The notes beneath the pieces were generated by a model. The model saw only the letters and a list, made by a program, of their open reading frames with translations, was not told the origin of the DNA and did not search any database. The translations under genes were made by a program, and so were the position numbers. A DNA stretch of 63,112 bases, the filler included, from Octopus bimaculoides (taxonomy: Eukaryota): assembly GCF_001194135.2 (NCBI RefSeq). It is 8 parts of 8 records of this genome, joined end to end, with 100 filler letters (N's around TTAATTAATTAA, not from the genome) between each part and the next. Parts side by side here need not be neighbours in the genome. Positions count along the whole stretch, not along the records: positions 1 to 16,757 come from NC_069000.1; 7 more parts are not named here. One strand, given 5' to 3'. Positions 5,941 to 13,863 of this stretch are shown in pieces. How positions within the stretch are numbered: position 1 is the first letter of the stretch; each line of letters begins with the position of its first letter.

Positions 5941-6016
5941 ATGAAATTCTTCCTCGCGGTCTTGCTCGTTGCTTGTGCTCAAGCCTTTTCAATCAAAAAC
6001 ATGATTGAAAGAGAAG
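5941..6016 (+). CDS. Secreted helical protein, coding exon 1 (signal peptide MKFFLAVLLVACAQA-FSIKNMIERE)
   Basis: Pyrimidine tract plus AG at 5931-5932, ATG at 5941, classic n/h/c signal with AQA cleavage motif, donor G|GTAGGC (phase 1). Confidence 0.85.
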
Positions 6017-7560
6017 GTAGGCGTCGTCATTGTAATTATTCGAAAGCGGCAGTAACAGTTAACATTTTATCTCCTGCATTTAAATCGAATATATTTCTGC
6101 GCGCGCGCGCGCGCGCGCGTGTGTGTGTGTGTGTGTGCTTGCGCATGCACGTGTATGTGCATGTGTGCCTATGTGTGTAGTTAGTCTCATATACGGTTTG
6201 AGAGAATCGAGTGGTTATCACAGAAAACTCTTCTAGCAGACCACATAGTAATTCAATATGGAGGAGTATAATGCAGAGTCCCATGCAAATGAAATTCAGG
6301 AGATCCGACAGATTATATTATTTCATGAGGAGTATATAAATCATGAAAAGTGAGGAGGTTTGGGAAATGAATTTAACCACTTGTTATTCTGAGGATAAGT
6401 AGTTATCAACTATCGAGAAATGTAATCACGATGTATTAAAGCTAACACGAGCAAAAGATGCTGGCCGATATCTCTAACACACACTGTGTATTTCATACTC
6501 TTCTATATATATTAAAAAATAATAATTTTCCTGACTTCTAGAGTAAAAAAGAAAACTGTAATTTAAAGTCTGAAATGAATTAATGGAAATAATTGCCAGA
6601 AATATGACAGAAGGTAATCCAGACACAATTTTTGGTGAAATGACTGCTAATAATTAACTATAACATCTAAACTAAGCTCTAGTTGACAGCCAATGGTATT
6701 CAAAGTTTGCTTGTTTACGCAAAGTTTGAAGCCTGTCATTAAAGCTAGTGTTAAATCCAACTTAATTTTTTAGCAAACAATATGGACTAGTAATTGTTGC
6801 TGCAGCCGTACTTGTTGATTTCTTAATCCCTCCCACTTCCAATTTTGAAGTCGCAATTGGTTATATAGTTAGATGAAACATTTATCTCTCAACAGATAAC
6901 GATCCAGTCACACTCTACACATGTAATGTGGGGAGCGAAGGCAAATCATACCCGTTTTACTATTATAGAGGCATTGTAAAATATGACGAATCTTTTGATA
7001 ACATTCAGAACCATGTTCTATTCCTATTCCTGTGTTACCGTTGTTGTTGTTATTCTTCGGCTTCTGGTTAGCCGTCACCGAGCAAAAGTGATTAAACCAT
7101 TTCAGTTATGACTATTCAATAAGTTACTTTATCTAATATATCCTTATTTTTTATGAAAGCCGGGCATGATTTGAGTGAGATTTGAATGCTATTTCTAGCA
7201 AGTCGAGTCTTCATACAAATAGTGCTCCTCAATGATTCATCTACCGTCGGCGTAGCACTCGGCAGGTTTGGAATTTATGAGGCTTTCTGTCGATATGGTA
7301 CACGACGGCGAAGGCTTCAGTGCCTGCGCCAACTGGATTTAAGGATCTGCCCAGTTGGTTGACCCAAATCTTAGTATTATGGCAAATCGTTAAAGAGTCG
7401 ATAATTCTTCCGGTTATTGAAATTCTCAGTTCAAATTCAGCTGCAATCAGCTTTGCTTTTCAATTAATCCACTTACTACATCCTACCAAATTTCAGCCCT
7501 TAAACTAAACTTGGATACTGTTTTTTCCATTTTAAGCTTTTGACCTGCTTATCAGTCAAG

Positions 7561-7648
7561 CTACCAGTGAACTGGAGACAATGGCCATAAAAGAAGTGGA
7601 GAGCGCCCTCACCGACGAAGGACTTCACGTCACCTCATTCGAACGCAG
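7561..7648 (+). CDS. Secreted helical protein, exon 2 (ATSELETMAIKEVESALTDEGLHVTSFER)
   Basis: Only one frame is open. Donor AG|GTATGT (phase 2) matches the next exon. The 5' boundary is ambiguous: CAG at 7553-7555 or AAG at 7558-7560; only the latter is in phase with exon 1. Confidence 0.75.
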
Positions 7649-9479
7649 GTATGTAGACATGGATATTAGGTAGCAGGCATAGTTGTGTTGTTAACAAGTT
7701 TTTTCGTAATTACAATATTCTAGATTCGATACCAATGCGTGGCACCTTGGGCAAGATTCCACCAGAGCCTCGAGTTCACCACTGTTTTGACAGATTGAAA
7801 ATGCACGGAAGCTTGATATGTGTACATAGTTATCTATCTATCTATCTATCTATCTATCTATCTATCTATATATATATATATATATATATATATATATATA
7901 TNNNNNNNNNNNNNNNNNNNNNNNNNNNNNNNNNNNNNNNNNNNNNNNNNNNNNNNNNNNNNNNNNNNNNNNNNNNNNNNNNNNNNNNNNNNNNNNNNNN
8001 NNNNNNNNNNNNNNNNNNNNNNNNNNNNNNNNNNNNNNNNNNNNNNNNNNNNNNNNNNNNNNNNNNNNNNNNNNNNNNNNNNNNNNNNNNNNNNNNNNNN
8101 NNNNNNNNNNNNNNNNNNNNNNNNNNNNNNNNNNNNNNNNNNNNNAATGTTTTTGATTAGAAAGGGAATTAAAATTGAAAGTAATTGAGAAAGTCGGACG
8201 AATGCCCGCTAGGTACAAAGGGGACAATGAAAACATTGATACAAAATCTTACACTTTTATATTCGATATTTTTCATATAAGTTACATTATGCATACGTAC
8301 ATACATACATACATACATAAACATAGTAGCGTATATATATGCACACACATATATACATATATATATTTAGATATTTCTCTGTGTGTGTGTGTGTATGTGT
8401 GTGTGTGTGTGTGTGTGTGTGTGTGTGTGTGTTTATTTAAAATGTATGTGAATGTATGCATGTGTTATCATTAGTCTCTTCCGTACATTAACTTTGTGTC
8501 TAAAGCAACAGTTAAATCATACTCATGCTTTTATATATATAGATGATGATGAAATGAATGAAGATCACAAAAAGCGAGACGGTTTTTTATTCCTTTAATT
8601 GGACGTATCTGTGTGCATTATATGTTTGCATTATGTCTCTGATTATTGATATAGTGGCATAGACATTTTGACAATGGCTGGTTGATCCTATAGTTGGAAA
8701 TAACTTTTCTTCTTCCATGAATAACCGAAATGGAAACTTTGATAACGGATACGACGGTGGTCTGTATGTCGAGTATTATTCAGGCGGTAATAAGAACGCC
8801 GTCGAACACGGCAATAATAAGTAGAAAGATAGTTACAATACCACGTGTATGTTTATAAGGAATACTGTGTAAGACGTGCAACTTGCATCCATGCAGGACA
8901 CTGGAGTTTGGAGTTGGTAGTTGCAATAACAACAGCATTTATAAACAACCAAGATGCATTTATCTTACACATATAACATATACGACATATATAACATATA
9001 TAACACACATACACACACATGAATATATATACACACACGCATACACATATATACACGTAACTCTTTTTCTCACTGTATAAACATACATACATATATACAT
9101 ACACACACACACACACACACACACACACACACACACACACACACACACACATATATATATATATTTATATATGCTTTCGGTGCGAATGGGTTTTTATACG
9201 GTGCCGTGTTTACAATCCTGTCAATAATAATAATGGTATTTTTATAGAAGCTTAAAGCTTATGGCGATCTCCGTGCATGAGTAAATAAAAGAGTCTAATA
9301 AAGGGGCATATAAGCCCTCTACAGAAAAAAAGAACCCTTTCCTAGACCTGTGGGTATGTTGTGTGATGGTGTGTGTGAGTGTGTTTGTGATGTTTGTTCG
9401 TGCCTTTGAAAACTTTTGACACACCATATAATGAAACAAACTCATAGTGTTCTTCGTTTGTTCTTCTGCCTTTCTTCAG

Positions 9480-9579
9480 CGTCATTCATAAAGTGTCTAC
9501 CATGGTTGGCGAAACTATCAAAAAGGAAATGACCAAAATAGTGTCAGAGGTCACCACCACCGGAGACTTCAAAGTTGCT
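9480..9579 (+). CDS. Secreted helical protein, exon 3 (SVIHKVSTMVGETIKKEMTKIVSEVTTTGDFKVA)
   Basis: Strong pyrimidine tract plus CAG, donor GTGAGT; phases 2 to 0 fit both neighbours. Confidence 0.85.
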
Positions 9580-9819
9580 GTGAGTTGTATTGATTCTGCT
9601 GTTTCTTTCTCTGTCTCTCTTTCTTTCTCTCTTTGTCTGTCTGCCTGTCTCTCTGTCTTTCTCTGTCTGTCTCTCTTTCTCATATTTTCTCCCGTTAACT
9701 TTCATCTTTCACTTCAATGTGAGCTTCTCATTATAGAACTTCATGAAGGGTATCAGCAACTCAGACGAATTATTGTTTTCTATATTCTGTAATTGAGCCG
9801 ATATAACATGGGTACCGTA

Positions 9820-9960
9820 AGACTGTGGTTCAGATGTTCGCTTCGCAACTACTTGGTGTTGGACTGGAATCGACCGTAGGTAATTTTGTCCATGCGTCTT
9901 CTGTTACAGCCTCAGACCACGCAAAGCCATTGAGAAGAATTTTCTTGAAGGAGAATCAGC
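9820..9960 (+). mobile_element. Highly degenerate SINE family A head (intronic)
   Basis: Aligns by eye to GTGGTAAG..CTTGC...GTGTCTTCTAC...AAAGCCTTGTGAG of 27835-27970. Confidence 0.55.
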
Positions 9961-12686: not shown

Positions 12687-12878
12687 GTCACCTACGACGT
12701 TCACCAAAAACGTGACTTGATCGATATCTTCGATAAAATCAATGACACGCTTCGTCGTATTGTTGGTCACCTTCACGGAAAATTCCATGATTTACATGAT
12801 TTCTTGCACCAAGCTATTGCCCATGGAAAAGACAAGTTGAAACCTCACATAGAAAACATCAAGAGTTTGGCTAAGACC
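12687..12878 (+). CDS. Secreted helical protein, penultimate exon ([64 protein letters not shown])
   Basis: TTTTTGCAG|G acceptor, donor GTAAGT, 64 open codons (phase 0 to 0), amphipathic periodicity. Confidence 0.88.
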
Positions 12879-12956
12879 GTAAGTTTTATATTTCTTTGAC
12901 TATTTTTACCTTCAATTATCATTCACTTCTTTGTCTCCCTCTCTCACACTCCCTCT

Positions 12957-13296
12957 ATCTATCTATCTATCTATCTATCTATCTATCTATCTATCTATCT
13001 ATCTATCTATCTATCTATCTGTCTGTCTGTCTGTCTGTCTGTCTGTCTATCTATCTATCTGTCTATCTATCTATCTATCTATCTATCTATCTATCTATCT
13101 ATCTATCTATCTGTCTATCTATCTATCTATCTATCTATCTATCTATCTATCTATCTATCTATCTATCTATCTATCTATCTGTCTGTCTGTCTGTCTATCT
13201 ATCTATCTATCTATCTATCTGTCTATCTATCTATCTATCTATCTATCTGTCCGTCCGTCCGTCTGTCTGTCTGTCTGTCTGTCTGTCTGTCTGTTT
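12957..13296. repeat. (CTAT/CTGT)n tetranucleotide microsatellite
   Basis: Read directly; explains the LSIY-repeat ORFs. Confidence 0.97.
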
Positions 13297-13658
13297 ATCT
13301 CCCTCTACATCCATCCATGCACGCACCCCACCTCCACACATATGTGTATGTTTTGCGTTTGCCTATAAATCCGTCTGTTTAACTATCTGCCTGTATATCT
13401 ATTTTAATTTTGACCATCTAGTTTTCTACCAATATTTACTGGCATGTGTTTATATGCATGTAGGCACTTAATTGCAAAAACGCACACACACACACACACA
13501 CACACACACACCCACACAAATACATACACACACAAACACTTACACACACATACATACATACATGCAGTATTACAAGTATCTGTGAGAATCTTATAATATA
13601 GGCATAAAATATAATTGACAGTTACTATACGTTGCTTTCTTTTAAAATTATATAACAG

Positions 13659-13820
13659 TTCATTGACCACATCAACATGGTGAGTGCGAAAGTAGCTCAA
13701 CAAGCTTTGGAATTTTTCAAACCCTGGGCTTCGAAACTCGGTGACACATGGACCAAACTTGTTAAAGACATCCACGAGCGTCTGCAGAAGTTGCACCCTA
13801 CAGCTCTTCCCCTTTATTAA
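13659..13820 (+). CDS. Secreted helical protein, last exon (FIDHINMVSAKVAQQALEFFKPWASKLGDTWTKLVKDIHERLQKLHPTALPLY*)
   Basis: AACAG acceptor in phase 0, open to TAA at 13818-13820, AATAAA 37 nt downstream. Confidence 0.87.
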   Translation, partial: FIDHINMVSAKVAQQALEFFKPWASKLGDTWTKLVKDIHERLQKLHPTALPLY

Positions 13821-13857
13821 GAATTTTAGTAGGCGGAACACGTATGTGCTCATGTTG

Positions 13858-13863
13858 AATAAA
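13858..13863 (+). promoter_or_regulatory. Polyadenylation signal AATAAA of the secreted-protein gene
   Basis: Canonical hexamer just after the stop codon. Confidence 0.7.

Follow-up and report, generated by a model that had tools for sequence, protein, structure and literature searches.

Introduction

Exchangeable apolipoproteins are not known to be established outside vertebrates and insects, and little is understood of how molluscs and chelicerates transport lipid in soluble form. Drosophila Nplp2 was annotated first as a neuropeptide-like precursor and was described later as an exchangeable apolipoprotein. Here, we describe a gene of Octopus bimaculoides whose predicted product shares physical properties with these proteins. 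It is located on the plus strand of a stretch of 63,112 nucleotides from RefSeq assembly GCF_001194135.2 (referred to as the window, to which all positions below refer), which is AT-rich animal DNA full of microsatellites. An earlier inspection of this DNA without database searches (the sequence-only reading) had assembled six exons between positions 5941 and 13863 into the gene of a secreted helical protein. We find that the locus is almost certainly one protein-coding gene with seven coding exons and a short upstream noncoding exon, and that it belongs to an unnamed family shared by several phyla. We then weigh what the protein might do.

Structure of the Gene

Six coding exons can be read in the window, and all of them are bordered by AG and GT dinucleotides. 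Exon 1 (5933-6016, plus strand, as are all features of the gene) includes 8 nt of the 5′ untranslated region (5′UTR) and 76 nt of coding sequence (CDS, 5941-6016). The signal peptide MKFFLAVLLVACAQA (5941-5985) and the 10 residues after it are encoded here; the exon matches residues 44-71 of the relative P0002 with 96% identity (tblastn) and ends in phase 1. Exon 2 (7537-7648, 112 nt, ending in phase 2) requires an AAG acceptor at 7535-7536, and is followed by exon 3 (9480-9579, 100 nt, phase 0) and exon 4 (10216-10342, 127 nt, phase 1). The two remaining readable exons, E5 and E6 in the numbering of the sequence-only reading, are located at 12687-12878 (192 nt, phase 0 at both ends; tblastn E = 1e-35 to P0002) and at 13659-13820 (162 nt, including the TAA stop codon at 13818-13820). 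E5 encodes HQKR (K at 12708-12710 and R at 12711-12713), and the start of a C-terminal module (C-module) that includes a His-rich stretch, and E6 carries the best-conserved part of the module (…AQQALEFFKPWASKLGDTW…). A polyadenylation signal, AATAAA, is present at 13858-13863, 38 nt past the stop codon. After splicing, E1-E4 make up 138 codons plus one base, and E5-E6 make up 117 codons plus TAA. The phases agree at E1/E2 (with the AAG acceptor), E2/E3, E3/E4, and E5/E6, and clash at a single junction, between E4 (phase 1) and E5 (phase 0).

Each of the six exons is matched at the same borders by full-length relatives from Octopus vulgaris and Argonauta (tblastn, E from 1e-7 to 1e-36), and these relatives all have 23 extra residues between E4 and E5, which read K-SSLFEEGIEKMFDNLFEKIMKA in O. 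vulgaris. The exons of the O. vulgaris locus (L003) are 76, 112, 100, 127, 68, 192, and 162 nt in length with GT-AG introns throughout, and the readable exons of the window have the same lengths. The 68-nt exon of O. vulgaris, which encodes the 23 residues, is located at L003 17444-17511 (aacag/AA AGC...GCC/gt). We have observed by blastn that window positions 11151-11633 are collinear with L003 16717-17165, and positions 12387-12485 with L003 17743-17842. Since these blocks bracket the 68-nt exon, the fifth of seven coding exons is placed in the run of Ns at 11689-12385, which spans L003 ~17166-17742. Its product in O. bimaculoides is expected to be K-SSLFEEGIEKMFDNLFEKIMKA or a close variant and is predicted to begin with K-SSLFEEGIEKMF…. 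An exon of 68 nt also restores the frame between E4 and E5 because its length is of the form 3n+2. When the readable intron was searched for the missing exon by tblastn (E ≤ 10, word size 2), no trace of it appeared.

The locus has two further gaps. The gap at 7902-8145 corresponds to L003 13618-13979 within intron 2 and hides no exon, because E2 and E3 join without residue loss (…FER-S-VIHK… in P0002). The 10-N gap at 11141-11150 corresponds to L003 16637-16717, that is, 80 intronic bases. The gaps adjoin (TATC)n or (TA)n microsatellites (7831-7901, 11120-11140, and 12467-12506), which is probably why the assembly breaks at these places. A (TCTA/TCTG)n array of 340 bp occupies much of the last intron (12954-13294), and the intron before E5 is ~2 kb longer in O. 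vulgaris beside a (TA)n run (junction at window 12485-12467, against L003 17842-19828), a difference that reflects either an insertion in one species or the collapse of this stretch in the assembly of the window.

Could the locus be no functional gene at all, but a set of chance open reading frames (ORFs), a pseudogene, or an assembly artifact? The frame break between E4 and E5, the nonconsensus AAG acceptor of E2, and the presence of three gaps would be in line with such a view. The frame break, however, is accounted for by the exon hidden in the gap, and the acceptor of E2 occupies the identical position in O. vulgaris, where it is CAG, so that the AG dinucleotide is retained. Every exon is conserved: identity between the window and O. 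vulgaris is 93-95% in exons versus 82-89% in introns, with a dN/dS of 0.40 overall that falls to 0.28 in the C part. Moreover, full-length relatives are expressed, being encoded by intronless mRNA-type contigs of ~950 nt. Exon homology, collinearity with O. vulgaris, the orthologous exons, and dN/dS together refute the nongene explanation, to which we give next to no probability. Two intron stretches, 8452-8595 ("DDDEMNEDHKKRDG") and 9884-10018 ("AIEKNFLEGESAERL…"), were considered as exons and rejected, since no relative matches them.

The sequence-only reading had described the readable gene well. Its six plus-strand exons with GT-AG boundaries, its account of the phases (three junctions in agreement outright, one by way of the AAG acceptor, and one failing), its stop codon, and its polyadenylation signal are all recovered here. 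The exon that it supposed to be missing is the one placed in the gap at 11689-12385. Its estimate of about 247 residues plus the missing exon was too low, as the readable CDS has 255 codons and the full product has ~278 residues.

The 5′ End and the Public Gene Models

Upstream of exon 1, positions 3800-3825 probably belong to a short 5′UTR exon (exon 0), which has a donor AAAAG/gtaagt at 3825/3826 and joins the acceptor cag/5933. A candidate TATA box, TATAAATA, is located at 3768-3775 on the same strand, ~50 nt upstream of this donor, and is conserved in O. vulgaris (window 3350-4029 corresponds to L003 9658-10332 with 91% identity). Gene predictors have instead added 46 residues (MTLGYG…ITSK) to the N-terminus in P0010 and P0002, using an exon at 3696-3825 joined to 5933 (3696-3836 in tblastn). 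This extension is probably an artifact, because the candidate TATA box TATAAATA is inside it, the Argonauta models begin at MKFF, and a squid-like mRNA (L001) has an in-frame stop codon upstream of the MKFF ATG.

The gene is already represented in the databases by LOC115221216 and LOC115221193 (Argonauta hians), by a "Hypothetical predicted protein" of O. vulgaris, and by LOC106879077 and A0A0L8IAW7 of O. bimaculoides. These entries are the same gene, its orthologs, or its paralogs; they share 53-100% identity and the exon structure, and none has a name or function. The two public O. bimaculoides models are halves of one gene with artifactual ends. A0A0L8IAW7 (P0010) is 100% identical to our product over the N half, and LOC106879077 (P0006) is 99% identical over the C half. 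Besides the MTLGYG… head, P0010 has a tail, HLRRSPKT, that results from a cryptic splice within E4 (10216-10245) and an out-of-frame reading of E5, and the first 34 residues of P0006 are intron read-through (12526-12712). The split in the public annotation is caused by the assembly gap.

A search of the full-text literature with locus identifiers, the UniProt identifier, peptide strings, and the topic found no paper on the family, and the supplements of an octopus brain cell atlas and of salivary proteomes do not mention it under the identifiers available. As the sequences are already deposited, the gene as such is not new, and the description of the locus as an uncharacterized system was overstated: it is a single gene whose product is deposited as uncharacterized proteins. 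What is new is that the gene model has been joined and that a cross-phylum family, with a two-module architecture, a convertase site, and apolipoprotein-like physics, has been recognized.

Features of the Predicted Protein

The full product is predicted to be a protein of ~278 residues that consists of a signal peptide, an acidic helical half, HQKR, and a basic, His-rich module of 108 residues. The signal peptide, as read from the sequence, is MKFFLAVLLVACAQA; it has an A-x-A motif and precedes FS, and the chain downstream of it is free of Cys. Of the mature N half, 122 residues can be read, with an isoelectric point (pI) of 4.7. The C-module after HQKR has a pI of 9.2, and four of its residues are Pro and ten are His. 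Computed over 18 residues, the hydrophobic moment averages 0.38, in comparison with 0.21±0.02 in shuffled sequences (z = 7.5), and the moments peak in the C-module at 0.5-0.7. Hydrophobicity recurs every 3.65 residues in the C-module, every 3.81 residues in the N half, and every 3.69 residues in the family. A periodicity of 3.65-3.8 points to the 11/3 value of helices that lie on lipid surfaces and not to the coiled-coil value of 3.5. Lys and Arg are found at 117 degrees from the hydrophobic face, and Asp and Glu at 148 degrees in the octopus protein and 133 degrees in the family, which is a class-A layout. The hydrophobicity scale used in this test is biased in the opposite direction, and the permutation statistic for the charge layout is taken as qualitative because overlapping windows inflate it.

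An AlphaFold2 (AF2) model built from an alignment of 46 sequences has nine helices of 18-32 residues, with Pro or Gly at the helix junctions (mean predicted local distance difference test score [pLDDT] = 71; predicted template modeling score [pTM] = 0.47). The pLDDT exceeds 90 at the residues that correspond to the last exon. The model from a seven-sequence cephalopod alignment was unusable (pLDDT = 39.7). There is no sign of internal duplication between the cephalopod N half and the C-module (hhalign probability 0.2%), and no 22-mer tandem repeat was detected. In these respects the sequence-only reading fared well: the signal peptide MKFFLAVLLVACAQA before FS, the acidic region, HQKR, the 108-residue domain, and the absence of Cys outside the signal peptide all stand, and a secreted, all-helical product is supported by the signal peptide and the predicted helices. 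Of the structural checks that it proposed, structure prediction returned helices, whereas the Foldseek search of the model returned no significant match in the PDB (best E = 0.73).

The basic site before the C-module is conserved. The Arg of HQKR is present in 47 of the 66 family sequences and is preceded by Lys or Arg in 37 of the 66, the consensus being E-K-R/S. In the AF2 model the KR site (12708-12713) falls in the break between two predicted helices. The octopus protein thus has a conserved, exposed dibasic site of the kind found in prohormones, and the conservation of (K/R)R ahead of the C-module suggests cleavage by a convertase. No amidation-type signal (G-K/R-R) was found in the octopus protein. 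Among the non-cephalopod relatives, GKR closes the N-terminal module (N-module) in Lingula (P0031), a chiton (P0025), and Tachypleus (P0030); the Patella sequence P0019 has three -LLGK[RK] sites; and P0026 has repeated short peptides between KR sites, which end in Gly.

An Unnamed Family Shared by Several Phyla

When the joined product was searched against protein sequences, ten matches were obtained, all from cephalopods (E from 1e-165 to 1e-54). Besides the two O. bimaculoides fragments described above, they include full-length proteins of 278-281 residues from O. vulgaris and Argonauta hians, and three full-length sequences from mRNA-sized contigs of ~950 nt. A profile made from seven full-length cephalopod proteins was then compared with 1.84 billion representative sequences, which yielded 76 matches, 32 of them at E ≤ 1e-10. 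The family is found in other molluscs (the limpet Patella vulgata and the chiton Liolophura), in the brachiopod Lingula, in the nemertean Lineus, and in chelicerates (Tachypleus; the spiders Larinioides, Trichonephila, and Uloborus; the mite Halotydeus; and the sea spider Nymphon, which has a tandem cluster of six models). Among the relatives with a named source, the arthropods are chelicerates only, with no insect. Many further matches are contigs of ~1 kb from samples of marine metatranscriptome type. Where source names are given, they are uniformly "uncharacterized" or "hypothetical". The octopus protein can therefore be placed, by sequence, as an ortholog of the "uncharacterized protein LOC115221216" type, in a family that has neither a name nor a Pfam domain. 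In O. vulgaris a paralog is located ~49 kb downstream on the same strand. Two "hypothetical protein" entries of Acinetobacter baumannii, P0041 and P0087 (WP_150929198 and WP_207290961), also have the signal peptide, N-module, EKR, and C-module. These entries probably represent arthropod sequence that contaminated bacterial assemblies.

The common part of the family is the C-module of ~105 residues, matching E5 and E6 of the window. Several positions are nearly invariant among 66 nonredundant modules (A in 64, a second A in 60, L in 61, G in 63, W/Y in 58, together with FF and P), and the motif can be written N-I-K-x-x-A…E-A-L-E-F-F-x-P-Y-x-x-x-L-G-x-x-W, with the variants N[IV]K and P[YFW]. 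The octopus module, which includes …QQALEFFKPWASKLGDTW… after HQKR, carries this motif. It also shares with the family a signal peptide and a Cys-free mature chain, 54 of 70 members being free of Cys outside the signal peptide. Non-cephalopod members have a three-helix N-module of ~95 residues, which ends in (G)KR in 16 of 19. It is plausible that the N half of the cephalopod proteins is homologous to this module; the claim is put no higher because the hhalign probability between the two is 59%, in comparison with 25% for a C-part control.

The C-module also occurs in tandem, with six copies in P0011, four in Lineus, and two in the chiton. The polyproteins P0011 and P0012 are from metatranscriptome-type contigs of ~1.6-2.4 kb, and P0011 has no dibasic sites between its modules. 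In P0021, about ten tandem helical units of ~75 residues, split by KR, are followed by one C-module. P0001, a partial sequence of 393 residues from Argonauta hians, contains the whole C-module twice with identical sequence, which looks like a duplication in assembly or annotation and not like a real two-module protein.

Similarity to Named Families

Neither the octopus protein nor any of its relatives reaches the cut-off of a Pfam model. Below threshold, PF01442 (ApoA1/A4/E) is found in 27 of 46 members (best E = 5e-9, 36 bits against a cut-off of 90), YtxH in 14 of 46, and PF07464 (apolipophorin-III, apoLp-III) in 9 of 46 (best E = 5e-8); the octopus protein itself does not match PF07464 at E ≤ 10. 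When profiles of the family, the N-module, and the C-module were compared with the sequences of the PDB, ApoA-IV (E = 3.7e-6), ApoA-I (7e-5), ApoC-I, ApoE, and apoLp-III were among the top natural proteins, the apolipoprotein matches ranging from 4e-6 to 5e-2. Exchangeable apolipoproteins are the commonest natural matches in the PDB, aside from channel proteins of MotA/ExbB type and ZorA, a phage tape-measure protein, and FtbJ. The apoLp-III structures 1ls4, 1eq1, and 1aep are matched by the family profile at E = 0.003-0.02. The five-helix bundle of apoLp-III was not recovered, as the AF2 model has nine helices and apoLp-III is absent among the 50 best Foldseek matches listed. No significant similarity was found to alpha-pore-forming toxins (Hbl B, E = 0.0016 over 82 residues; AhlC, Foldseek E = 4.8, template modeling [TM] score 0.15).

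Possible Functions

We consider it a serious possibility, a little short of probable, that the gene encodes a secreted, lipid-binding protein similar to exchangeable apolipoproteins, which is probably cut by a convertase. After secretion into the hemolymph or another body fluid, the protein would bind lipid or other hydrophobic surfaces reversibly by means of its amphipathic helices, which are class-A and 11/3-periodic, and a convertase of furin/proprotein convertase (PC) type would probably cut it at the conserved (K/R)R that immediately precedes the C-module. Several results weigh against this interpretation. The joined octopus protein scores only 20.7 bits with PF01442 (E = 3.6e-4; gathering cut-off 90), and the highest score with PF07464 among ten relatives scanned individually is 29.2 bits (cut-off 36.3). 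De novo designed helical bundles match the profiles as well as or better than apolipoproteins do (top match 4tql, 4e-8), so that the similarity may reflect generic amphipathic-helix composition. The AF2 model, with its pTM of 0.47, has no confident tertiary packing, and Foldseek found nothing significant for it in the PDB (best E = 0.73, TM ≤ 0.2). Because the Pfam cut-offs are missed, designed bundles score alike, and Foldseek returns nothing, membership in a named family is not supported. Three squid-like homologs lack the dibasic site, and the protein was not found in octopus skin-mucus, ink, and salivary proteome tables when these were searched by one UniProt identifier. In addition, the C-module is conserved across phyla far beyond what is usual for apolipoprotein helices, a hint that it binds a specific partner and not lipid in general. 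The sequence-only reading had stated that no named family could be assigned, which agrees with the missed Pfam cut-offs, and had compared the protein with exchangeable apolipoproteins. The latter comparison is upheld as a likeness in working (amphipathicity, periodicity, class-A layout, and subthreshold matches) and fails as membership in apoLp-III or ApoA1/A4/E.

That reading had also offered a precursor whose acidic part masks a membrane-active module. In such a proprotein the acidic N half would hold a basic, membrane-active or antimicrobial C-module inert until a convertase cleaves at HQKR. The N part is indeed acidic in all cephalopod members (pI 4.5-5.3) and the C part basic in most (9.4-9.6, with 7.1 and 8.1 in two squid-like sequences), the (K/R)R site is conserved ahead of the C-module, and the highest hydrophobic moments (0.5-0.7) are found in that module. 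There is also a weak sequence match to Hbl B (2nrj, E = 0.0016), and AhlC and YaxA appear in the tails of the Foldseek and sequence-profile results, respectively. Yet the toxin-like matches are nonsignificant, and the charge polarity is present in 34 of 70 members and is no family trait. The net charge of the C-module is only about +4 over 108 residues, the six-module relative P0011 has no dibasic sites between modules, and a folded hairpin, more than a lytic helix, is suggested by how strictly FFxP[YFW]xxxLGxxW is conserved. We therefore regard masking as distinctly unlikely; the original proposal is supported in part, by the conserved basic site (47/66 and 37/66) and by an acidic/basic polarity that holds in cephalopods but in only 34/70 members, and the lack of a dibasic site in three squid-like homologs does not fit it. 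The same basic site could belong to a precursor of prohormone or granin-like type in the regulated secretory pathway, in which the helices are spacer or sorting domains and the active products are peptides freed at basic sites. Amidation-type sites in non-cephalopod relatives (GKR at the end of the N-module, Patella P0019, and P0026) and an acidic, Cys-free composition of heat-stable type are consistent with this. The octopus protein, however, exposes only one dibasic site and lacks Gly-KR, cleavage would yield polypeptides of ~140 and 108 residues instead of peptides, and it is the large C-module that is conserved, not any short peptide. The abundance of relatives in contigs of whole-plankton metatranscriptome type would also be more typical of a bulk secreted protein, and a prohormone seems improbable to us. 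We give even less weight to a structural or extracellular-matrix protein, forming coiled coils or bundles in mucus, egg coat, cuticle, or a biomineral matrix. Secretion, long helices, the tandem paralogs and multimodule variants of the family, and a cephalopod His-rich stretch that could bind metal would suit such a role. Its helices are nevertheless short (20-30 residues) and interrupted by Pro or Gly, with a periodicity of 3.65-3.8 residues against the heptad value of 3.5. Low-complexity and cross-linking residues are absent, and a limited search of octopus mucus and ink proteome tables did not find the protein.

Neighboring Sequences

An ORF of 151 codons at 2809-3264 on the minus strand encodes a Tc1/mariner-type transposase helix-turn-helix (HTH_23, 31.6 bits, above the cut-off; HTH_SB, 25.9 bits). 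From its sequence it is identified as the remnant of a transposon, and O. vulgaris has it at the orthologous position, with 91% identity. ORFs of 89, 161, and 65 codons at 823-1578 and 14591-14788, all on the minus strand, have no Pfam match and are probably decayed retroelements; "NYRISLLSV" in the 65-codon ORF (14591-14788) resembles a reverse-transcriptase motif. The upstream neighbor in O. vulgaris is a galactose-3-O-sulfotransferase gene (PF06990, L003 1-697), which is beyond the reach of the window. No Rfam match was found in the window.

Comparison with Known Apolipoproteins

The practical outcome is the repair of a gene that is split into two defective public O. bimaculoides models and the identification of the gap that hides one of its exons. 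Beyond this, the results point to a conserved and abundant secreted family across protostome phyla, without a name, a Pfam domain, or literature. If its members are exchangeable apolipoproteins, they would fill a gap outside vertebrates and insects; a C-module released as a ligand or effector would instead represent a new conserved module of signaling or defense. A broader proposal, which we put forward only tentatively and think on balance unlikely, is that the family represents the exchangeable apolipoprotein long missing from non-insect protostomes. It would then be a lipid-binding hemolymph protein of ancient origin, with two modules and processing by a convertase, that molluscs, brachiopods, nemerteans, and chelicerates have in common and that was lost or replaced in insects, which use apoLp-III; the C-module would dock to a receptor or a particle.

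Compared with described proteins, the octopus protein resembles ApoA-I, ApoA-IV, and ApoE in being secreted, in lying in the range of ~28-46 kDa, and in having long amphipathic helices split by Pro or Gly, and both have 11/3 periodicity and a class-A charge layout. The genes of these apolipoproteins are in tandem clusters, and in O. vulgaris a paralog is ~49 kb away. Unlike them, the octopus protein has no detected 22-mer tandem repeat or internal duplication, is encoded by seven coding exons where the apolipoproteins have one large last exon, and has a strongly conserved C-module with a fixed motif and a conserved dibasic site. Insect apoLp-III, a hemolymph protein, is likewise Cys-free, secreted, and all-helical. 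It is, however, a five-helix bundle of ~160 residues, in comparison with ~260 residues in the mature octopus protein, and has no counterpart of the conserved C-module or the KR site. Drosophila Nplp2, although far smaller, presents the same ambiguity as the octopus protein, between a processed precursor and a lipid-binding hemolymph protein.

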